From positions 62,001 through 126,000 of the forward strand of contig DF237007.1 in assembly GCA_000708835.1 (NCBI GenBank): a DNA stretch of 64,000 nt, read 5' to 3'. Each line of letters starts with the position of its first letter. Position 1 is the first letter of the stretch. This stretch comes from Klebsormidium nitens. Taxonomy: Eukaryota; Plantae; Klebsormidiophyceae. The notes under the pieces are model-generated. The model ran no database searches and was not told the origin of the DNA. It saw only the letters and a program-made list of their open reading frames with translations. Of the stretch, positions 6,300-52,700 are shown piece by piece. Both the position numbers and the translations under genes were made by a program.

Positions 6300-9200
6300 T
6301 TACATCCCCGCCATGGTGTCAAGCACGGTGGACGTAATACTCTCCGCGCTCACGTCCGGCAGCGGGAAGTATCTCCCGCTTCCGGCGCGCGCGATCTCCT
6401 CCCCAAACGACTCCTGCCGCCACCGCTCGGGGTCGATCACCAGCAGGTTCACGTTTTTCTGCATCAGGGGCGTAAGTTTAGAGTAAGTACTATGGCGTTT
6501 ATCACAGATGGAACGCTGATCCTCAAAGCGTCTTGATTTTGTTCTTTTCGACGTGCACTGCAGCGAGAAGATGTCAAACGTAGGACGGACGTACTAAGGT
6601 CGTATGGAGGAGCGGCTACTATCACGATTTTGACGACTTCTAGAACACATATCCGTCAGACGTGAAAAACGCCAACCGTATGGATCTTCAAGGGCGAGCG
6701 CCGTTATAGAGCGATCTTTCTGCTTGACTTAGTGTGTTCGAAGGTGGTGTCACCATTTCCCACTCGTGATGCACTTCGTGGTTTCGTCCATTCGGAATCG
6801 TGAATGTCAAAGTGAAAATCAGAGTAGTCAAGAATGTGACCTTTACCTGGTCACCGATAACCCGCGCCACGTCCAAAACCTCCTGCTGGACGTCCGCCAT
6901 CGTGTTCTGCGCCGACCGGAAGAAGGCGGACGCCCACGTAGCGCCGTACGAGAGCCGCGTGCCCTTCTTCCCGGACAGGCTCACGTTCGGGTCCGCGTCC
7001 GTAATCGCGACTATTAACACCTTCTCCACCTCGCGCCGTTTCTGCGCGGCTAACCCGGTTTCTAACCCGGTTAGCAGCGCCCGGGCGATCGGGGTTCGGC
7101 CGCCGGTTTGCGAAATAAGTTCGACGCACTTTCGGGCTTCTTGGACGGAGCGGGTGGGAGGGAGGAGAACGGTGGCCCCGCTTTTGGCGAACTGGATGAT
7201 GGCGACTTGGTCCCGGTTAACGTAAACCCGGTCGAGGAGCTGGATAACCGCGCCGCGCACGCTGTGGAGGAAGGCCTCCATGCTGCACGAAGTGTACGAA
7301 GACAAGTTTAGAGACAGGACCAAACCATGGCCTTGGGTCAGAATGCCCTCAAAAGCCTTGGAAGGACGCCTCCTTGTTCTGAAGGAACCGAAATATGCGC
7401 AAACGGGTCGAAGAATGTCAGGATCAAAAGCTGAGATGGCCGAGAAAGACAAGCAGATCCTAACGGTCACGCAGCCAGAGGGTTGACTTACAAGCAACAA
7501 GGGAGTGTCAACGAGCAAACGAAAGGCCTGACGAAGAACGCACTAGCAAGGGATAGCAAAGAGAAAATGGAGAGAAGCGAGCTCGTGCACTTATGAACTG
7601 GCCATTTTTTCCAATCTGCATCTTACGTTGATTCATCCTAATATACGTATTGTGAAGCAGACAACACTTCTCGTACGACCTGCAAAAGAAACACTAAATA
7701 GCAGAGTAAGATCGTGCTCCGTGATGCCGTACCTGCCGCTTGTGTCGACCACAAACACGACCAGGTTTGTCGCCTTCCGGATCCGCTTCTTCTCCCGTAT
7801 GTCCTCCATCCGCACCTGCACCTTTACCCGACTCTCGCCCCGGTTTTTCCGCTCCCTTTCCGCCAGTCTCGCCTGCTGGTGCGGCGCGGAAGCTCTAAGC
7901 GTCGCGTCGACCGCGACGCGACTCATCTCCGGAACCGCCGCCCGGGGGAAGATGGACTTGACGTACCGGCCCCGGAGCGTGGATTCCGCCAGGTTCTTCC
8001 GGTTCCGCCCGACCTTTCCGCGCGACTCGTCCTTGGCGAGCTTCCGCTTGCCCATCAGCTGCAGCATTTTGAGCAGCTCCGGGTCGGCCACTTCGCCCGC
8101 GCGCGAGAGGGTGAACTTGGACGGGAGTGCGCCCACCTGCAGCAGTAAGGAGACTGTAGGGTCAGCATTCGCACAGCGACGGTCGTCGGGTCCTGACCTG
8201 CATTAAGCGCCGTTCCGAGACGAACCGATGATTCAGGATGCGAACAGAAAGAGGCCAGGCTTGCACGTCCGGGACGCGCCACGACGCAAATTGAAATACT
8301 TGGTCAAGACGAGCCATGCCAAGGGCTCTGATCAAGGCGACCCAGTAGAATGTCCGTTTATGACGGCATGCACGTTTTGTCCAGAGTGACCCTGAAACAT
8401 CGATGGGAATCTAGACAAGTCTCTCGATCGCACATCAAGTGTAAGCTGCTCTCACAGCAACACATAGTGGGCTTCGCCGATTCGTCGTCGACTTGGAAGA
8501 CTCTCGCAGCGGATACTCCCGCGCAGAGACCGCGCAGGTCCTAATGAATATGGAGGAGAGGCAATAAACATGCAAGGCAAATCCCTCTGAAAGGCCCACA
8601 GTGTCTGCACTTGCACTTACCTGAGGCCCCTCCCCTTCTTCGCTGGTTCCCATCTCCCCCGCGCCTTCCCGCCCCCCCTCCTCGTTCTTCTCTCCGCCCT
8701 CGCTTTTCTGGTCGAAAGTCACCTTCTCCCGGTCGTCCGTTCCGCCGGAACCCCCGGAATCCGGCGACGAGTCCTTGTTCTTGAACCCCAGACTAAGCTG
8801 CGACATCGCCGCTACCGCGACAGCGGGGTTGTCGTCCTTTTGCGCGGCGGCAAGCGTTTTCTCGAGCGCGCTTTTCTGCTGGAAAAGCCGCCGGAGAGCG
8901 GAACGCTTCCGGTCCCACGAGCGGAACGGCGGAACGGGCCCCGGTTGGGAAAGCGAGTCGGCCTCTTCGGGCGCGACGAGTTGGAGGTGGGACGCCAGCT
9001 CGGTGATGAGAGAGATGAGAGCTTCGGCGTCATCGGGATCCATGGCTGCATAACAAAAACAACCGTATGTTTGATTGCACACATCAGTGGTCATCCGTCG
9101 TCACCAATTCAAGAAGAAGGTGTAGATGAGGGCATGGCAAGGGGACAAAAGTAGTTCTATCATGTAAAGGAAAACAACGTGCTTTTGTCCAAACCTCGAA

Positions 9201-12200
9201 AAACGGATAAGCCGCAGAATAATCAGCCGTTAACCACTAATGGTCAGTCGTAAATATCCATCGAGCGAACATGGCGCTGTGGTTAAGGACAACCCCAACG
9301 GCGGATGTATGATCTGCCGTCAAGCGAAGCAACGCCCGGAACGAGCCTAGCACGAAAGGCGCTTCAACGAGCGACCGGAAAGAAAAGTTCTTTAGTTGTC
9401 CATCCAAGCTGGGAGTGCGTCGGCGACACGCGGCGTGACGCTTTCAGTCCTAACGCTGACTAGCGCAAGTCAGAGTCTCTGTAGGCCACTTTCAAGACGA
9501 AAACCCGGTCCAAAAGAAACCCTCCAGTCTTTTTTGCATTTTTTCCAAAGAATGTCAATCTCCAGTCGCTATCGGTAACTTTTCTGTTTCGTCTTTCTAC
9601 TGAGCACCTTCAACAACTTTTCTATCCTCACCTTTCAGCTGCTCCTCAGTCGTCCCTTCCTCGAGTCCCCGTAGAGTCTCCATGGCCCCCGCCCGCACTT
9701 CCAACGCCTTCAACACCTCGGGCGAGACTTCCCCGGTCGCTTGCTCGTGCGCGATCGCCTCTGCTGCTGCCCGGTCGAACCGCCCAGGAGCTGGCTTTTC
9801 CTCCTCTGCAGAAATACAAGCTCGCACTTCTTCGCGTATATGACACAAGGAACAGTACTATGTACGACTGTCCACATGACTTCAATTGTAGTGCCATAAC
9901 GACTTTTTCTGGATTGGATCTTTCGTTTCAGTGGAAAAATGGCCATAAAGACCTCAACAACATCAAAGAAGATATAAGCGAAGTGTTCAGATGTGAGTAC
10001 GTTGCAAAGCGTTCTCCATGCTCTGGTCGACCTGTTCACAAGAACGAGCCCAGAACTTGTCAAACGGAACGAAAGTATCCAGACTCTTCGGAACGGGCGA
10101 TCAACCCAGAGTCCTCTCGGCTTACTTACTCGCTACCCCTTACCAAGATGAAGCAAGCCGGAACTCCAAAGAACAGTTTCTTCGAAAACTCCCCCTCACC
10201 TTCCTCTTCTCCGTCCTCCTCCGTCTCCACCTCCTTGCTCCGCGGCAGCACCGCCAGCTGTACCGCCGCCCTCAGATCCTCCGCACTTACTGCCCGGGCG
10301 CCCCTCAGCGCGGCATGTGCCTTCGCCACGCGCGCCGCAAACGCTTCCGCCCGGTGACCCTCGCATTGGCCACGGATCGCCTCTTGAACCAAGTACCGGG
10401 TTTGCTCGGAGGAAAGAGTGACGCCCTCACGGAGAATCTCCTGACCCCTCGCGACGATGTTACGGAGATTCGCTTCTGGGTCGGGGGATTGTACCGGTCG
10501 GATAGGGCCGTCCGAGAAGCCCAGCACGCGGTCGACGGCCTCCGGGCGCCATTCGAAAGCGGGCCGCGCCTTTCCGTTGCTGTGTCCGTTTCTATTTCCG
10601 GTTCCGTTTCCGTTTCCGTTTTCGTCGGCCTTCTCACTTGCGGCTTTAGCCCCGTTCTGGCCCCTCGTTTCAACGGCATGCTGGTCTGTAGCCAAAGCTC
10701 GAGCGCCGTTTCCGTTGCTGACATCGTTCTGTCTTTTCCCTCGACTACTAGAGAATATGCCCCGCAATCCAAACCAAGGGCTGCCATTTCCAGTTTCTTT
10801 CTTAGCCCCGTTGCCTCCATTCTCTCTCGCCTGGGCAGCTTTCGTACCCGTCCCCCTGACACTCGTTCCGTTCACATGCTTTCCGCTCATATTCACTCCG
10901 TTCGTACTTGTTCCGTTCGCCGTCGTCCCATTCTCACTGGCCCGATTCACACCCGTTCCCTTCCCTTCGGCTCCATTTGAAGCCCTCAAAACTTTCGACT
11001 CTACTCCCTTTACAGCAACTCGCCCGTTCCCCTCCCTAGCCCCTGCACTTCCATTCTCACCAACACTCATCCTCCCGTTCTCAACCGGCTTGCTTCTCCC
11101 ATTTTCATGCCCGGTCAGTTCAGAAGCGTCTCCGGACTTCGAAACCGGTAGTCCAAAACGCGCGGTTCGAATCGGACCGTCCGCAGTCGCCACGTGCATG
11201 GCGAGTCGATCGAGTAAATGCGGCCGCATCTCCCCCTCTTCGGGGTCCCACGTGGCAATCACTGCAGCGGGGCGGCAGGGGTGCCACACGCTGAGGCCCT
11301 CCCGCTCAATTGCGTTGTAACCAAGGTCGACTGCAGACGAACGGTGTTGAAAGTCAGAGTTAAACGCTTTTCAAATGGACGCTTCGATTCCACGAGAGGA
11401 GTGTTCCTAATGAGTGAAAATTGAGGGATCGTTTGGATTCGAGGATCATTTGTTGCCCCACCGAGCGGTTCTGCCAGAAAGACGTGACACAATGAGAGGA
11501 AGTACTGGTAGATAGTCCGAGAGTACAAGATGGCCCACTCTTTCACCTAGGCATTGTCCACAAGAATCGAGAAGGCGTATATGTCGTTTGAAGAAGCATT
11601 CACAAAATTCACACCAAACAAGACAAGACCACACAGAAAAAGTTCAATATTAACAGCCTTGAGGTTGCTCAAAGTAGCACACTTCAAAAAGCAGGGTTTT
11701 ATGAGTAGATATTTGTAGACTCACTTGCATTGAAGAGAAGATTTGCAACCCCTTCATCTAGCAAGTTGAGGTTATCAACGTACAACACCCCCCGATGCGC
11801 CTCTGCCAACAGCCCGGGTTGGAAAGCCGCCCTTCCGCCTTGCAGCGACTTCTCAAGGTCAACGCTGCCCAGTAGCCGGTCTTCGGTCACGTTCAAGGGC
11901 ACCTGGCAAGTGCATGACAGGTGTCAACGAGATCTTGTACACGTTATGCTTTGAAAGTCGACTTCAGATCTTGAGAGAATTGTCGAATTGACCCAACCGG
12001 GAGCATAAGACAGTTTCGTGGATTAAGGCACGACACGGCCTGCGCCCGCTTCACCGAAAACACATCACGAGTGCTTAGGTCAAGAGGCACGGCTTTTGTG
12101 AGCACTGCAAAACAAAACCTAGACGGTGGGACGCGCCTAAAATACTGCCCTTGGGTACATGCTTGTAATTTCGCTTGCACGGCGTCTACCGTGCGCTTCG

Positions 12201-13077
12201 GTCAAATGAAAATCTTCTGCTGTCCAGTCGCGGAAAGCGTTCCTTAAGACTCCAGTGCCGACAAGAATTTCAGAAGGACTAAAAGCACTACATATGACTT
12301 TAGGAACATGCACTTACTCACCTGCACAAACGGCACGTCCCGCCACTGCGTCTCCACCTCATTTCCCACCCTCTCTAGTTTCTCCCTCAAACCGCTCTCC
12401 CACTCTTCCTCCCTGCCTGGGTCTGCATTTGCCCAGCTGCCCGCAACCACCTCGATCTGCGGCAAAAGCGCCGGAAAAGCTCTCGCCATGACCGTCTTCG
12501 CTGTGCCCCTCGGGCCGGCGATCGCAACGCCCCCCAGCTTGGGATCGATCGCAGCGATCAGCAACGCTTTCTTCGCTGCGTCATTGCCCACGATCGAGGA
12601 CAGCGGGAAGGACCGCCTTTCAAAGGAGTCAGGAGCGACTTTGGGAGATGGTTCTGCTTTTGTGGGCGCAACTTGCGCAGGCCTCTCTGACACCGCAGCC
12701 GCATGCGGGGCAGCGACGCATTGTCGCCTCTTTGCATGTGTCAAGGGTGTGCGGTGTTTGCTTCCAAGCAGGCCAATCCGGTCTTCAAGGAGGAACCCAC
12801 TGAAAGCTGGAAAATGGCGCTCTGGCCAGAGACTGAATCCGTTCACGTCTGGAATACTAGACGCAGCTGGAGCCGCATGCAACGGACCAGTGGAAATACC
12901 ACTGCGCTTACATGGAATCAATGCCGATCGCCGCTGCGTTGCTTTTCTAAGGGAGAAATGGAGTGGTGCATGTCTCGTGTTGGTTCCATGAGAGAAGCTT
13001 TGTGGGCTGCCGTATGGCGAGCAGAAGCGCTGCGGAGAGCTGAACAGTGACAAAGGGCAAGTGGCCGCAAGTGCCAT
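6300..13077 (-). CDS. CHLD: Divergent magnesium-chelatase subunit D-like protein (AAA+ plus vWA), about 1220 aa, with transit-peptide-like N-terminus
   Basis: Eight exons: 13077-12322, 11902-11725, 11330-10200, 9805-9632, 9045-8621, 8136-7733, 7282-6847, 6458-6300. All have GT-AG ends and consistent phases; total 3663 nt = 1220 aa + stop. Motifs [79 protein letters not shown] follow the ChlD order. Confidence 0.9.
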
Positions 13078-29500: not shown

Positions 29501-31841
29501 GTCGAGTGATCGAAAAGTCGAACGCAGAGATACACGCAGGTCTGAGCAGAGCACCACGCCGACAGAAGACCAGAACGAAATGATGACTAGATCTAAGGGA
29601 AAACCGACCTTGCGGAGGTTTTTCAGCGAAACTGCGACGCAGTGCCGACCAGATGAAGCAGTTTTGGATCTGACTAGCCTGCGCGGAGTACAGTTGGCTT
29701 CAGAGGAGACACCAGATTTCCTTGTAAAAAGGATGAAATCAACGAGATAAAGAAGAGGTTCACACGAGCAAAGCGAATGAAAGCACCACAGGTCGGAGAA
29801 AGGGAAGAAGGGCGTACAATGCAGAATTGCACCGTAGGAGGATTATGAGACAACTTTTCAACACGAGCTTTCGAAATATGCGCTGTTCTTTCTCCGAAAA
29901 CAGGATCCTGAAATGCCTTCTTCGCACCTGGAACGTGCTTCTGTAGCAACCCCTCCCGATCCGCACTATACCCCCCCGTGGCCAGAACCACCGCGTCTGC
30001 CTCCACTGCCCGGTCGCCCTCCCCCGACCCGTCCCCCACCCTGCACCGCACGCCTTTCACGCGCCCGGTGCGGGAGTCTTGGAGCAGTTCGAGCGCCCGG
30101 GTGTTGGTCAGGACTTGGACGGCGGAGGGGGGGAGGGAGTGAAGATGGTCGATGAGAGTGTGCATGATTACCCCCCCGATGTTCGTGGCTTTTGCGGTGG
30201 CGGCCGCGCGGTGGGTGCGGGGTCGAGAGTGGCCGCCTGAGGGGGAAGGAACGAAGGAGAGACAGAGTGACGAGGGGGTTCTGGTCTGGGGCACTTTAGG
30301 GCAGTGTTTGGGGTTAAAGAAAGAAGGTCTAACTGGACAAGTTGGCTTTCGGAAAAAGGGTAGTGGGGACTCGATGAATGTAGAGAATGAAAGCATGAAG
30401 GATGACAATCGGGAAGATGACGCAAGTATGACAGGCCCGTCTGACCTACTTCACGTAGGAGATGCGAGAACGCAATATGAATCTTTGGAGTGCGACTTCG
30501 GAGTGCGACTTATTGAGCTGCCTGCACGAGGCTGTGGAGACCGAGAGAAGAGTTACACGTTTTGGCTGTGCGAAGGAGAGTGCAAATCTTAGGCAATGTC
30601 GACCACTTCTCGAATTGAAGCTGACATGGAGGAGGTGCGAAAGAAGGATCCATTGCACGAGCAACTGTACAGAAGTTGAAGTACTTCAAGGCAGTATTCG
30701 ACCAACAAGAAGCACCAGCTCAGATACACTCGATATGTCTAAATGTGAGACAAACTTCCTAAACCTTCTCTTTCTTGTATGAATACGACCCGAGGTCTGT
30801 CAAAATGACGAGCTTAAACAAAAGAAAAAGAATACGCATAAGACTTGAAACAAGCCCACGAGCATGTCAGATTTTTAGTTGTTCAATCTCCTTACCACAT
30901 TGTGCGATGTTGCTAAGGTCGATGCCCAGGCTCTGAAGGGCGTCGATTGCGCCCGCCGACTTGTTGACCAGAACGTCGACCAGCTCTGCTGCGCAGCGGC
31001 CCTTTCCCGAGCGCAGCGTATCCTCCTTGAACAGGGCGGTGCTGTCTGGAATGCCGAGCGCATTCTGGGGGGCAGTCTCTACAGGCATTAGGAGGGGGGT
31101 GAGAACCGTTTTTAGTATGGTCGACCGGATCAGATGGGGCACTTGTTTCTGGTTTTCATGGGTTATCTCAGATATGTTGAAGAATGTCGGGGGTGAGATA
31201 GTCAATGAAGTTTCATGACCGTCCAATGACATGCTTGAAGTTTGAGACCGTAGCTTAGAAGCTCAAGCTCGAAAATGATGATGCCAGTTCAACACTCTTT
31301 GGTTTGGCTTCAAGCACATAAATGTGGGAGTCTCTGGACTGCTGAAATACAGATTTTAACACTCCTTCCTGAGGTAAAATGGCGATCAGACTCGCCTCTT
31401 CAGGATCTCCAACACAATGCAAGTACTGGTGCAAGAAATCGCAAAAGTTTCTAAGCTCCTAGTCTGGTTATCTCCCTTGGACACGACAAGAGGGAGAAGT
31501 TGCACACCACATATGGCTACTGAGGGAACACATATAAGCGGCCCGCGCAACGCAGGAAGATCAAGGAGGAACGATTACTCTGATTCAGAAGTCCCATCAC
31601 ATAACCCAAAGAGTTCCTGGGACTGACAAACCAGACAAAAATCAGCCTGTTGAGTAAGCAAAAGCAACTCACCGGCACCATTGATGCCTGAGCTAGCTTT
31701 AGCAGAGTTCCCCCCCAACTTGGCACACTTTTCTATGATCGTGACACGCCCCTTGTTCTTGACGACCTCGAGTGCGGCGGTAAGCCCTGCCAGCCCCCCC
31801 CCAACAATGACCACGTGCCTGCTTTCAGGAGCGGCCTCCAT
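26589..31841 (-). CDS. Soluble FAD-dependent fumarate reductase, Osm1/Frd1/flavocytochrome c flavoprotein family (503 aa)
   Basis: Exons 31841-31673, 31078-30896, 30236-29928, 29398-29158, 28455-28269, 27573-27303, 26740-26589 with consistent phases, 1512 nt. Motifs [86 protein letters not shown]. Confidence 0.92.
28491..28774. promoter_or_regulatory. Three perfect palindromic G-boxes (GCCACGTGGC) at ~137-bp spacing in a fumarate reductase intron
   Basis: GCCACGTGGC at 28491-28500, 28627-28636 and 28765-28774. The motif is seen directly; a regulatory role is only inferred. Confidence 0.35.
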
Positions 31842-46760: not shown

Positions 46761-49700
46761 TCAACTGCTCGTCACCCGTTGCAGTGACGTCGTCAGATCC
46801 GGCACCATGGCAACCGTCACAACGAAATAGTCCGTCCCCAGGGGCAGCCCGAACGGGTTCCACCGCGGCCCCCTTCCCCCCCCCTCGTTCTTCCCCTCGA
46901 TCAAACCCCCCGCCATCGACTCTGGCGACGGCGGCCGCGTCACGTTGTGGTCGATGTGCACGATCTGCCCCACGATGTACTTGTGAGCGGATTCCGGCTG
47001 GTGGTGCCGGAACAGCAGAACGGACTCCTCCGCGAGGAAGTAGTACGGGCAGTTGCAGTTGACGGCCTCGTAGTGCCCGACCCCGTTCGGCAAAAACACC
47101 GCGAGCTCGTGCACGTTGAACGACGTGAAGCAGATCTTCTCCTTGCCGATCTGGACCGCGCGCTCGTGTTTTACAGCGAGCGACCGCAGCTTCTCGCTCG
47201 CGACCTCGACTTGCTTCACCAGGCGTGCTTTGGCGTCCTCCGCATGCTGGATGCGGGCCAGGAGGTCGCCGCGCTGTTGGACCAGCTGGTTGACCTGGAA
47301 AACAAAAGGAGGATTGCTTCGGACCTTAGGAGCTGGCCTTATCGGGTTGTAGTAAGTGACCAGTATTGTTGAAGAAATTTGACAGAAAGTTCTTGCACAA
47401 AAGTGGCCAAACCGTCAAAGAGATGAGCTGAGAGCTTGATGCCCTCCTGAATCAGCCAATCGACCTTAAGTAGTAGAGAGGAACGTAGTCGTTCTTGAGT
47501 ACGGGTCCTGGAAAAAGGAAAACTTACACCAATGTAAAACAAGCACAACAGGACTGATAACCTCGAACTCTGACAGCACAGTCTCCAGGAGTGCAGACCA
47601 TCTCAGGCTGAAGTTATGCAGTTCGAGCAGATCCAACACAAAAGAATGACCGCTGTGGCACATCAAACGCTCACCTCCTCCGAGCACACCAGATAAACTG
47701 CCACAAAGGCTTCTTCAGTGGGTAAAGAAAATTGTCGCAACGCACCTGCTCAGCCAGTTGCCGCACCGAGCCCACAAACACCTCCTCGTCCTCCGCACGC
47801 CCCAGGCCGCCGTTGCTGAGCGACGCCGCCAGATTGCTCAGCGCCTCCGGAAAAGCGTCCGACGGCGCTGCCAAGCACCGGTTCAGCCGGTCCAGTAGGC
47901 CGTGCATCCGGACGCTCTTGGCGCGGAGAGAGTCGTACTCCTTCCCGCGCCGCTCGGCGGTGACTAGGTTGGTCTGCGCCGTCTCGCGGGCCTCGTGCAG
48001 GTGGTTCTCCAGGTGGGCGCAGTTCACCTGCAAGCGGAGACAAACGCCTCGGTCAGTGTGGAGTTTGTGTTTGTAAACTGGCTCCTTGAAAGCGAGCTTT
48101 GACTTCTGGATTCAGCACGAACGCGCGTTACCTTTCTCAACTGTCTCACTTCGTCAAAACATGCTTATCCGACATCCGTGGCGACATACACAGTGTATCA
48201 AAGCTCGGGAGTGCTGGACGAGTTCCAAAAGTCCAGAAAGACCGAGGGCTAATTCGGAGCACGCGCCTTGTTCTGACCCAAACCTCGAAGATACAGATGG
48301 CCGCATCAAAGCTCGGGAGGGCTGGACGAGTTCCAAAAGTCCAAAAAGACCGAGGGCTGACCCGGAGCACGCGCCTTCTCTCCCCCAAAGCTCGAAGACT
48401 CAAATGGCCGCTCGACTCCTCCAAGAGAGCCCTTGCAAGAAGCAGTCCTTAGCACAGAAGTTGACCCTCTCCCCAGCTCTGAAAAGGTAAAACAAACCCC
48501 AAACCCCAAACCCCAAACCATGAAACGCTCCAACCCACCTGGCACTCGCTCAGCAGGTCTGCGTTCCGCTTCAGTTGCGTGTTCAGGTCCGCCACCTCCG
48601 CCGTTAGCGCCTGCACGCGCCCCTCCGCGTCCACGCACGCCGCCGTCCGGTGCGACAGCGCCTCCTGCAGCTGGTGGAGCTCCCGACGCAGGGTGACGTC
48701 ATGCGCCACGTCGGCTCCGCTTGCTTTATGGCGGGCGGTGTCAGCCTCATCCTGTACGGTCAGTAGCGGGCGTTCAATCAGCAAATGCGTTCTACAAGTT
48801 ACGTTCTAGCGATGTCGGCCACGTTCTGACGGTCAGAAACAAGCTTTGTTCATGAGGAGTGTGTTTCGCGTATCTCATTTAACAAAAATACGCCCTCCTT
48901 CTTCAGCGGGAGCGGTGCCGGCCCCTTCCTGACCGTTCAAAAGCACTTGGGAGTTATTCATAGTGCCTCCGTATCAGTGACGAAGGCGGACTATGCAGCT
49001 CAGGTCATTTGTGCAGGATTACGCAATCGCTGAACCCGATGCTGATTAAGGAGAACGTTGACCACTGGAACGTTCGAGCGGCTGCTTGCTGAAGGGACCC
49101 TAAGTGACAAGAAGGATGACGAAACTGCAAAAACGGGCCGCACAAGAACTTCCAGCAGAGGCTTCATCGGTACTTCGAGTAACACATGCCGAAGCAGACA
49201 AACGTGAATGGCTTTTCAGCAAACATCGTCATGTTTACGACTTTCGCAGGCAGAATCTGCTGACGAAAACAGTGACCAGAGGACTCAAACGACAGGAGCC
49301 GTGTTCGAACAAGGAACGTCTAACCCGTACCTTCGGCTCCGTCCGCTTCCCGCCAGCCTCTTCCACCCGCCCGCTTGCCCCGCCCCCTTCTTGCGACGCA
49401 CTCACCCCCCCTTCCTCCATGTCCCTCACAACGCTGCCCATCCCGCTCTCCAGCATTCGCGTCTCGCCTAGCGTCGCATCTACCATCGTTTGATCCAATC
49501 CCGCCGGCCGCGCCTCTTCCACCCTTTCCGAGGGGTTGCTCTTCTCAAGACTCGTCACATCCTCGCCGCCCATGTCCCCCCCCTTCTCCGCAGTGACGAC
49601 CGACCCCCCCTCTGCAGTACCAGACGCCTCACCCAGCGCCTGGTGCGACTTCTTATGCTGCTCCGACAGCTGCGCCTCGACCTCCCGGATCCGCTGCTCA

Positions 49701-52700
49701 TACGCCTCTAGTTGTTGCTTCTGCCTCGCCAGCGACTCCTGCAGGAACTGCGCGTGCTCGTCCTTCCGGCGCAGCGCCTCGCTCACCCGCTGCGCCGCCT
49801 CCCTCCTCCGAGGGGGGGCGGGCTCTGCCGATTCCTCCCCCCCAGCCTCCTCCTCTTCTTCCAAAGTGCACAGCATCGCGACTGCGGCTGCATACTCAGA
49901 CCGCAACCACGCGTTCTCCACTTCCATGTCGTAGCCACCGCCCGCCACCCCCCCTTCAACTGACGTCTCTCTCCTCTCCACCCCCGTCATGATGCTGACG
50001 TCACCCCCGCCCTCGAACGCCCCCGCCTTCTGCGACCCCACCATCGTACTCGTAATCATCGCCCCGCTCCCGCTCATGCTCGCCGACAGCTGTCTCGACC
50101 CCCCCCCCAGCCGGCTCTTCGGCCGCTCCTCCGGCACCCCCCCGATCTGCGCCAAGTTTTGCAAGTCCGCAACGTCGATGTCGAGCAGCGAAGAATCGAA
50201 GGTGGGCACGTTCACCTCGCACTGGCTGGGCACTCCCGAGAGGCCCATCCCCTCTAGGATCTCCCGTGGTAAAAGGCCCTGCTGCCGCATGAACTCCTCC
50301 CGGCGCGCCACCTCAGCATCGCGATCTCGCGCCATGCGCTCTGCCAGCTGGCCGGCCTTGCGCGTGTACAACTCAGCATAGGCCTTGCGCCGGACGACCT
50401 CAGCAAGGCACGCGCGGTAGCTGGACGCGACCTTTCGCACAAGGAGCAGCTCGGCGAACACCTCCTCCTGCGGTTTGAAGGGTAGTGGAGCTTCAAACTA
50501 CGTAAATCACAGGTTGACTGTCGGAGAACAGAAAAAGCAGGGACGAAATGATAGACAATAAGCAAAAGAGGGACACATGGCAAGACAAGCAAGGAAAAAG
50601 ATTCGGATCTAGTGGCCCAACTTATGGCAAACCCTGCCGTCAAGATATGAAGCTCAGGCTATCTAAAGAGGAAAGACTTGGGGCCCATTTGGCAATTTTG
50701 AAATGCATTGGCGCGTCGGTTCTCTGCAGGTGCTGACAGTTTGATAATCAGCGACCAGCAGGAGCACACTCCGTTCGATACCAGTCTGTTCCAGCCAGCT
50801 GGCCAAAACGCCCCACCTGTCTCTGCATCGCCTCCCGGTAGCCCACCAGCTGGTTCCGCATGTCGCGGATCCGCCGCTGGAGGGCCGCCACGCTCTGCAG
50901 CTGCGTATGCACGCAGCGCGTCATCGCGACCTTGCACTTATTCATGTGTTGCACGAGCCCCGAGAGGCGCGCATCACAGTGTTCCACGGTGGGTAAGTGG
51001 TTGTTGATGTGGACCTCGCTCATCGGGTCGAGGGCCGCAACCGCGTCGAGGGGGCGAAGGGACGAGGTGAGCTGCCCGCTGACGCAGTCTTCGACCAGCT
51101 TTTTGACGGTGTTCAGGTCCTTGCTGGAGAAGGATAGAGAGACTCATCAGCCACGAAATCAACATTTGGTCGATGCTAAAATGGCCCTGGAGTGCGTCAC
51201 GAGATTAACGACGGCTTTTAGTTCTTGTACAGGTGGAAGTAGGATGTAACAATTGCCTGTCAAATCGACTAATAAGTGACCTCCAATCGAGCTGAATAAT
51301 TGGCAGTGTTCAGGTCTTTGCTGCAAGTGGAGGGTTAAGGAGAACGCTAAGCCAGAGGAACGAGATCGTTGATTCGGCTTTGGGCTCACCTGGAGGCCAT
51401 TCGGAGCATAGCCAATCAAGCGGCTGCTCTTAAGTCGCTGCTGCAGAAACCAAAATCCCTAGAACATTGGGCTCTCCGTCAACTTCCTAAAGTTCGGGGT
51501 TAACGCGCTCCTGAATAGACTATCCTCCACTTGAACCTCGATTGTATCCCCGTTCTGTGAACCAAACCCCAAGGCAAATACGACCCAGACCATCCCTCCT
51601 TTAATGTAACCTCTTTCAAAACGTCAAGGTTCGCTACCTTCTGCGACGTTGGAAACAAACCATAAGCTATGTTCCAGACGCAGAATCGGTGTAGAATCAT
51701 GGCAAAACTACTGACTCTACTTTACGCTGGCCTTGACTTCTTACGCACCTGAGCGACTGCAGAATGCTCGCTTGCTCGTCCACCGCCGCCTGGTGCTCGT
51801 CCATCTGGTCTTCAATGTGCTCCAAATCGACATCTGGTTCCGTCATCTTGAGGTCCTCTACGTTCCTTTGCAGGCCCGTGAATTGAGCCCGCAACTCGCC
51901 GACCTTGGCCTCGAAGTGGGTATGCGAGGTTGCGCAGTCGTCAGCCCACTTTCGGATGCCCTGGTCGTTCAGACAGTCCAGCAAGGTGCTGCAAATGAGG
52001 ATGACGCATGCCATCAATGAGTGAGACTTCTAATTTCAACTGCATCAACTACCTTTTCGCATGGTCAGCCACTGCTGATAGGCACGTGATTGACACGAAC
52101 CCTGCTACAATTAGAGAAAGAGGACTCTTTGCCTTACTTTACGAAAACAAGGACTCACATCACTAGGGACATCGTTGACACAGCTGCTAGTGCACGATTC
52201 AAGCCTTTTCGAGTATTTTCAGACAAGGCCTGGGATGCGGGGGACATCCACAGCAGCACTACATCACTCACCTGCGACTTTCTGTCTTGAGGACCGGGTG
52301 CAGCTCCGTGTTGCGAAGGCGCTCCATGTCCCGCTCAAAGTTGCCGAGAATGTCAGAGTGCTTCCGGTGTTGCTCTTGGCAGGAGCGGGTAAATTCATCA
52401 TATCTGCAGGTGCAGTGACGAAGGTGGCTTTTTGAGTCATGCAGACAATGCCCCAACATCTGATCACCGTCTCTTGAGGGGGCAACTCCTCACTCATACT
52501 GAGTATGATAAGTTCGACTCTGCGTATCCAAAACTGGTATGTTACTTGGTCGTGAGTTGCTGACTGCCAAGGGCTCTGTACAGTATGATGAAAATGTCAC
52601 TACCCCGAAGAACAACTTCGCTCTGCTCAGAGGATGGTGATCACCAAAGGGGATCAGACCCCAGGACGAATATGCTTTTAAGGAGAGAACACCTCCTTCT

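Follow-up and report, generated by a model that had tools for sequence, protein, structure and literature searches.

An expressed, enlarged and strongly diverged CHLD gene in the alga Klebsormidium nitens

A 64,000-nucleotide stretch of the Klebsormidium nitens genome (assembly GCA_000708835.1, contig DF237007.1, positions 62,001 to 126,000 of the forward strand; hereafter the window, in whose coordinates positions are given) carries an expressed, constrained, strikingly diverged and enlarged gene for CHLD, the D subunit of magnesium chelatase. The gene runs on the minus strand from 13077 to 6300 in eight exons, which join to 3663 nucleotides encoding 1220 amino acids (aa) and a single terminal stop codon. 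It is already annotated as CHLD in GenBank, but the public model is truncated at its N-terminus. Mg-chelatase commits protoporphyrin to chlorophyll, and the D subunit is its least understood part: we know of no high-resolution structure of the full-length subunit, the role of its AAA+ site is to our knowledge debated, and we know of no established function for its linker. We consider it rather likely that the K. nitens gene encodes the working, and probably the only, D subunit of this alga, after a remodelling specific to its lineage. A first-pass annotation, made from the DNA letters alone, had taken the gene instead for a second, fast-evolving copy.

Gene model and family identity

Splicing was read from transcript contigs of four public runs from four studies, aligned to window positions 6400-12399. 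The spliced contigs define seven introns, all CT..AC on the plus strand, that is, GT..AG for a minus-strand gene. Six splice joints are common to all four runs. The seventh, 8134|8619, which becomes canonical after a shift of 2, occurs in one of the four, and its GT and AG are also kept at the orthologous locus of a second Klebsormidium species, represented by a genomic contig from sample SRR23617307. The locus is thus transcribed, and the exon model for which the first-pass annotation had suggested a check by RNA-seq is confirmed by spliced transcripts. The ChlD-like open reading frame (ORF) of about 1220 aa and all the motifs quoted for it were likewise borne out, by the spliced contigs and by a check of coordinates and translation. 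On the minus strand the ORFs appear as ChlD-type segments with stop-rich gaps between them. Four in-frame stops lie within the 20 codons upstream of the ATG at 13077, and similarity to the orthologue of the second species begins exactly at that ATG. The exons are as follows (dN/dS, the ratio of nonsynonymous to synonymous substitution rates, is that between the two Klebsormidium species).

12322-13077, minus strand: exon 1, aa 1-252; start codon, putative N-terminal targeting extension, then the first part of the AAA+ domain, which includes Walker A; splice joint 11899|12319, canonical after a shift of 3; Mg_chelatase and TIGR02031/TIGR02442 matches
11725-11902, minus strand: exon 2, aa 253-311/312; AAA+ core with Walker B; transcript joints; TIGR02031, 75 bits
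10200-11330, minus strand: exon 3, aa 312-688/689; last part of the AAA+ core, with WDPEEG and LLDR, then the long insert, the AAA lid and the beginning of the acidic linker; unbroken in contigs of all four runs; AAA_lid_2 match
9632-9805, minus strand: exon 4, aa 689-746/747; first part of a Klebsormidium-specific linker module; transcript joints; no Pfam or NCBIfam match
8621-9045, minus strand: exon 5, aa 747-888; remainder of the linker's helical module, followed by an acidic tail rich in Gly and Glu; all four runs show joint 9045|9632; no family match
7733-8136, minus strand: exon 6, aa 889-1022/1023; conserved pre-VWA segment (APxQ) and start of MIDAS (metal-ion-dependent adhesion site); TIGR02031, 73 bits; dN/dS 0.01
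6847-7282, minus strand: exon 7, aa 1023-1168; VWA / integrin-I core; VWA_2 match; match to BchD in PDB 2x31
6300-6458, minus strand: exon 8, aa 1169-1220 and stop codon; end of the VWA domain; joint 6458|6847; weak TIGR02031 match

Unspliced contigs of low depth cross intron 7 (6432-6865) and intron 3 (9778-10229) in the very runs that also contain spliced transcripts; most simply, these are pre-mRNA or trace DNA.

Residues 197-1220 of this model match GAQ80618.1, a record of 1024 aa titled "Magnesium chelatase subunit CHLD [Klebsormidium nitens]", without a single difference, and the public record therefore starts 196 residues too late. Beginning at Met197, it is without the putative targeting region and the P-loop of Walker A (window 12490-13077). 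The full-length searches and the fold model reported here used GAQ80618.1, with the first 196 aa searched as exon 1, and the joined 1220-aa model entered the local alignments and trees.

Judged by its sequence and its predicted fold, the K. nitens protein is by architecture a real ChlD. Its domains follow in the order of a ChlI-type AAA+ domain (core and lid), an acidic and proline-containing linker, an APxQ segment and a VWA domain whose MIDAS is complete. Searched exon by exon, the gene matches Mg_chelatase, AAA_lid_2 and VWA_2 in Pfam, and six of the eight pieces match the NCBIfam family TIGR02031 (BchD-ChlD), the other two matching no family. The AAA+ assignment is supported by PF01078 and PF17863 and by TIGR02031 on exons 1-3; the linker holds an acidic run followed by KPAPG at aa 677-696; and in the next segment ASAPHQQ aligns with AAAPYQK, PF26791 (AAPxQ) being matched on the second-species ORF orthologous to exon 6. 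In an AlphaFold model built on a 71-sequence alignment, the AAA+ core, the lid and the VWA domain are confident, with a predicted local distance difference test (pLDDT) score above 90; the best structural matches of the AAA+ model are BchI (1g8p) and ChlI (8osg), and VWA folds are matched in the PDB. TIGR02031 ranks first among the families for the protein as a whole and for exons 3, 6, 7 and 8, and TIGR02442 does so for exons 1-2. Among the best 120 matches listed, the top full-length ones are streptophyte CHLDs, Chara braunii first, at about 430-443 bits. The phylogeny that had been proposed as a check groups the protein inside the ChlD clade of oxygenic phototrophs (support 100/99), on a long branch rather than one of ordinary length.

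Added length, divergence and constraint

At 1220 aa, the protein is about 450 aa, or 60%, longer than canonical green CHLDs, which span 743-842 aa, and most of the excess lies in an insert of 204 aa and a linker module of 141 aa. Two of the segments involved can be placed in the window as follows, and a third lies in the linker.

10573-11184, minus strand: lineage-specific insert of 204 aa (aa 361-564) in exon 3, rich in Gly, Asn, Ser and Ala, which separates the AAA+ core from the lid
12628-13077, minus strand: N-terminal 150 aa, transit-peptide-like in composition and the fastest-evolving part of the protein, with 55% identity to the second-species orthologue

The insert has a counterpart in no canonical sequence. 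Its position corresponds to a short core-lid connection in ChlI, and ChlI/BchI matches in the PDB flank it on both sides. It is predicted to be disordered (pLDDT about 32, no secondary structure), is kept in the mRNA of all four runs, differs by insertions and deletions between the two Klebsormidium species and contains a hexamer microsatellite at 10571-10625. Opposite this Gly/Asn-rich segment lie two antisense ORFs on the plus strand, 10018-10980 (320 aa) and 10457-11320 (287 aa), which are Pro/Phe/Ser-rich and look like by-products of repeat-like composition rather than genes. In the linker, the additions (aa 694-780 and 787-840) come to 141 aa; the full AlphaFold model predicts this module to be helical with moderate confidence (pLDDT 57-87 in the helices), and a single-sequence AlphaFold prediction of the module alone is also helical, at low confidence (pLDDT 55). 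A word-index search of 5.8 billion proteins gave no homologue of the linker module at E<=1e-3 in the length range searched, and Pfam, NCBIfam and an ESM Atlas feature search gave no match. At the N-terminus, the region ahead of a conserved FPL motif exceeds its Physcomitrium counterpart by about 55 residues, and the first 60 aa contain 14 Ser/Thr, 8 Arg/Lys and no Asp/Glu, a composition that suggests a chloroplast transit peptide and plastid targeting.

The protein has evolved fast, as the first-pass annotation had proposed. In Tajima's relative-rate test with a cyanobacterial-type outgroup (two ChlD cluster representatives with cyanobacterial traits, from which we infer the label), unique substitutions number 147-169 in K. 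nitens and 49-61 in Chara, Closterium, Physcomitrium and a marine picoplanktonic green alga (p 3e-11 or less), an excess of lineage-specific changes of about threefold. The stem branch is likewise long: it measures 1.7-2.7 substitutions per site, where the end branches of other streptophytes measure 0.13-0.22. Identity to canonical green CHLDs is 45-49%, which puts the protein no nearer to them than cyanobacterial-type ChlD stands, while canonical green CHLDs are 72-88% identical to that of Physcomitrium. Of 273 positions that hold the same residue in 11 sequences from cyanobacteria to angiosperms, 78 are changed in K. nitens, and the changes are distributed unevenly over the domains, here set beside the regional dN/dS between the two Klebsormidium species.

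N-terminus: dN/dS 0.46
AAA core: 12 of 91 invariant positions changed; dN/dS 0.06
Insert: dN/dS 0.30
Lid: 5 of 34 changed; dN/dS 0.23
Linker: dN/dS 0.10
Pre-VWA segment: 13 of 49 changed; dN/dS 0.01
VWA domain: 48 of 99 changed; dN/dS 0.09

In the second species the eight exons are all present, no GT/AG site is lost and the ORF of 1199 aa is intact, at a synonymous divergence (dS) of about 0.47; the exons align at 76-95% identity and the introns do not align at all. Each derived motif, the Asn of Walker B included, is identical in the two species. Given this conservation of the derived motifs and the dN/dS values, the burst of change is old, and the sequence as it now stands, linker module included, is under purifying selection.

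The motifs on which the first-pass annotation had based its description of the gene as motif-degenerate are located as follows.

12493-12516, minus strand: Walker A / P-loop GPRGTAKT, Lys kept, aligned with canonical G(R/K)RGTAKT
11756-11788, minus strand: Walker B (YVDNLNLL), catalytic Glu changed to Asn (Asp-Asn, aa 295-296) in the translation
11233-11250, minus strand: WDPEEG in the translation, canonical (Y/W/F)NP(E/D)EG
10237-10476, minus strand: AAA+ lid with GHRAE, aa 597-676, PF17863, pLDDT above 90
7735-7746 and the codon that follows, itself split by the intron, minus strand: MIDAS DTSG|S, straddling the exon 6/7 junction, canonical DASGS
6985-7005, minus strand: ITDADPN loop (canonical ITDGRAN), MIDAS Asp kept, Gly-Arg-Ala changed to Ala-Asp-Pro

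In an alignment of 14 CHLD/ChlD sequences, the canonical forms from cyanobacteria to angiosperms are VDE(I/L)NLLD, (Y/W/F)NP(E/D)EG, TDGR(A/G)N and DASGS. Degeneracy is thus real for Walker B and for the TDGRAN loop. The P-loop residue flagged in the first-pass annotation varies (R, K or C), G(R/K)RGTAKT being merely the commonest form. The Asp-Glu of an active AAA+ ATPase is replaced by Asp-Asn in Walker B of both Klebsormidium species; the Glu is invariant in the 11 canonical sequences, and in the wider D-subunit family it is found in 24 of 70 members, with Asn in 6. The term does not hold for the critical residues, which are kept: the Walker A Lys (residue 194, outside the 71-sequence alignment), the arginines of LLDR and GHRAE (R638 among them) and the whole MIDAS set (D1019, S1021, G1022, S1023, T1086, P1087, D1118 and N1122), whose columns are invariant or Ser/Thr only in 70 relatives. 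All 15 columns that are invariant across 71 D subunits are kept in K. nitens.

Copy number and alternative readings

This pattern fits a Klebsormidium D subunit that would bind but not turn over nucleotide and would bridge ChlI and ChlH, since the Lys, the arginines and the MIDAS are kept and the hydrolytic Glu alone is lost. By homology, the nuclear CHLD product would be imported into the chloroplast, its AAA+ domain would enter the ATPase ring of ChlI as an allosteric partner that binds nucleotide but does not hydrolyse it, and its VWA domain would dock ChlH via the MIDAS in a Mg-dependent manner, so that the energy of ATP used by ChlI could reach the porphyrin-binding subunit. In the Klebsormidium lineage the gene has undergone a burst of change (Walker B Glu to Asn, nearly half of the otherwise invariant VWA positions, the 204-aa insert and the 141-aa helical linker module), followed by a steady hold through purifying selection. 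The new linker module may, speculatively, be a lineage-specific regulatory or spacing element. The concentration of the remodelling in the ChlH-docking domain predicts a co-evolved CHLH or an altered partner.

Several observations weigh against a working and sole D subunit. Replacement of 48 of 99 VWA positions that had been invariant for more than two billion years is extreme for a sole essential subunit and resembles the pattern that follows duplication. Two changes in the TDGRAN loop, G1119A and R1120D, the latter a charge reversal, are unusual against the 70 relatives, and lid residue R656, an Arg in 62 of the 70, is Ala in K. nitens; R1120D and R656A, too, are extreme for such a subunit. 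GAQ80618.1, with 196 N-terminal aa missing, reaches 427 bits on TIGR02031 and stays under the equivalog cut-off of 499.55 (exon 1 alone contributes about 49 bits; comparison scores are 831 for Physcomitrium, 816 for cyanobacterial-type ChlD and 559 for the Pedinophyceae sequence). K. nitens does not join the streptophytes in the free tree. However, a constrained tree with K. nitens as sister to the other streptophytes is not rejected (approximately unbiased test, p 0.082), and upon removal of other long branches its nearest rows are streptophyte algae; its position inside the ChlD clade is not fixed, because of its own long branch. Only one of the seven K. nitens introns (after PFVQ, phase 0) matches streptophyte CHLD in Closterium and Marchantia, which have 12 of their 13-14 introns in common in position and phase; by a rough tally of the sites available, a single exact match would arise by chance with a probability of about 0.03. 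The 11-12 introns common to Closterium and Marchantia and absent in K. nitens cannot be called losses, because two chlorophytes have one and none of the canonical streptophyte set. Finally, copy number was judged from protein searches that listed the best 120 matches, and an only copy is no more than probable.

The less probable though substantial alternative is a neofunctionalised paralog standing beside a canonical CHLD, with an altered VWA surface and a gained linker, and acting as a modulator of Mg-chelatase or with another partner. The threefold acceleration, the excess of replaced invariant positions in the VWA domain over the AAA core, the loss of the Walker B Glu, a gene structure unlike that of other streptophyte CHLDs, the TIGR02031 score under the equivalog cut-off and a new, conserved linker module without homologues all speak for such a copy. 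Against it, the gene is the one that carries the CHLD annotation, and no residue required for D-subunit function has been lost. In addition, Pedinophyceae sp. YPF-701 has a CHLD with an equal acceleration and other algal ChlD branches in the tree are long too, which means that rapid CHLD evolution is no rarity. No second Klebsormidium CHLD was found among the best 120 matches listed in full-length searches with either GAQ80618.1 or Chara CHLD, which is weak evidence, the rankings being flat. In a search of representatives with the VWA exon, the one close relative was a Klebsormidium fragment, all others having 49% identity or less, and a search of JGI metagenomes with the VWA half gave no relatives. 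The literature gave nothing usable on CHLD copy number in K. nitens, and accession-type terms occurred in no paper. Short VWA fragments considered as Klebsormidium paralogs were rejected: one lies in a bacterial operon, with CobN/ChlH-type genes as neighbours, and another is an exon of CHLD from a green alga of 65% guanine-plus-cytosine content. The contig of that alga (Logan SRR30952582), whose VWA exon is among the top representatives, carries a multi-exon CHLD unrelated to Klebsormidium.

The proposal of a second copy rather than the housekeeping CHLD is not favoured: the gene is GenBank's CHLD and is transcribed, its N-terminus resembles a transit peptide, and the purifying selection on it is strong. 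No support was found for any of the roles that had been suggested with it, as a non-Mg chelatase scaffold, as a partner of a second ChlH or in retrograde signalling. A gene decaying under relaxed constraint and heading to a pseudogene would account for the degenerate Walker B, the many replaced invariant residues and the long low-complexity insert, but it is ruled out for practical purposes by the purifying selection acting on the present sequence, with core-domain dN/dS of 0.01-0.10, conserved derived motifs, an intact ORF and all splice sites intact in two species at that synonymous distance, and transcripts correctly spliced in four studies. Least probable of all is a protein outside Mg-chelatase, either a horizontally acquired or ancient cobaltochelatase-type (CobT / TIGR02442-like) protein or another MoxR-VWA protein: exons 1-2 do score slightly higher on TIGR02442 than on TIGR02031, but over the whole protein TIGR02031 wins (TIGR02442 gives 417 bits, below its cut-off of 779.45 and below the 427 of TIGR02031), canonical CHLDs also score high on TIGR02442, the protein falls within the oxygenic ChlD clade with streptophyte CHLDs as its closest listed proteins, and the gene has spliceosomal introns, one of them common with streptophyte CHLD.

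If the gene encodes a working D subunit, this alga offers a natural mutagenesis experiment. Under a threefold acceleration, the Walker A Lys, the two arginines and the MIDAS have been retained and the Walker B Glu, the TDGRAN Arg and half of the invariant VWA positions have not; and the core-lid connection tolerates 204 added residues and the inter-domain linker 141. If it is the sole CHLD, the Walker B Glu and nearly half of the "invariant" residues of the integrin domain would be replaceable in a working enzyme. If a canonical copy also exists, the gene would be a specialised paralog of CHLD and, as such, unusual (we know of none described, and no literature search was made on CHLD paralogs); its product would still enter ChlI rings and might serve as a built-in modulator or an alternative Mg-chelatase bridge in a desiccation-tolerant alga.

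Elsewhere in the window, two ORFs on the minus strand are exon pieces of other genes: 49235-50461 has a match to an ATG17-like autophagy scaffold domain, below the Pfam cut-off, and 29674-30408 a match to the FAD_binding_2 flavoprotein domain.

Comparison with known D subunits

In domain order, from transit peptide to VWA/MIDAS, the K. nitens protein is the same as the canonical streptophyte CHLDs (Chara braunii, Closterium, Marchantia, Physcomitrium and angiosperm CHLD/ALBINA1). It differs from them in having DN where they have DE in Walker B, and TDADPN where they have TDGRAN.

The biochemically studied reference for these residues is Synechocystis ChlD, which does not hydrolyse ATP and whose site serves as an allosteric regulator that binds nucleotide (PMC3789969). 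Its Walker A mutant K49A is inactive, while the Walker B mutant E152Q assembles normally and retains about a fifth of the activity (PMC3789969); the integrin-I domain binds ChlH, and the MIDAS is required for catalysis (PMC6604950). The K. nitens protein keeps the K49 equivalent, the LLDR and GHRAE arginines and the MIDAS Asp, Ser, Ser and Ser/Thr, and carries a natural Walker B change comparable to E152Q. The linker of Synechocystis ChlD is a short polyproline and acidic stretch, whereas that of K. nitens is far longer and includes a helical module. With BchD and bacterial D subunits the protein has in common an AAA+ domain with a degenerate ATPase site, a MIDAS-bearing VWA domain and, as in most of the 70 other aligned D-subunit sequences (ChlD and bacterial relatives), a MIDAS Thr in GG.TP; the bacterial subunits are without the insert and the linker module, and K. 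nitens branches in the oxygenic ChlD clade instead.

The CHLD of the chlorophyte Pedinophyceae sp. YPF-701 (CAG9465357.1) is accelerated to the same degree, with 102 unique substitutions against 102 in K. nitens, and both proteins have G-N-x-A-A-K and AGPRG changes near the P-loop, which look convergent because K. nitens is closer to the canonical streptophytes than to the Pedinophyceae protein. The Pedinophyceae protein is nevertheless of normal length (779 aa), keeps DE in Walker B and TDGRAN, and has changed 25 of the invariant VWA positions, compared with 48 in K. nitens.

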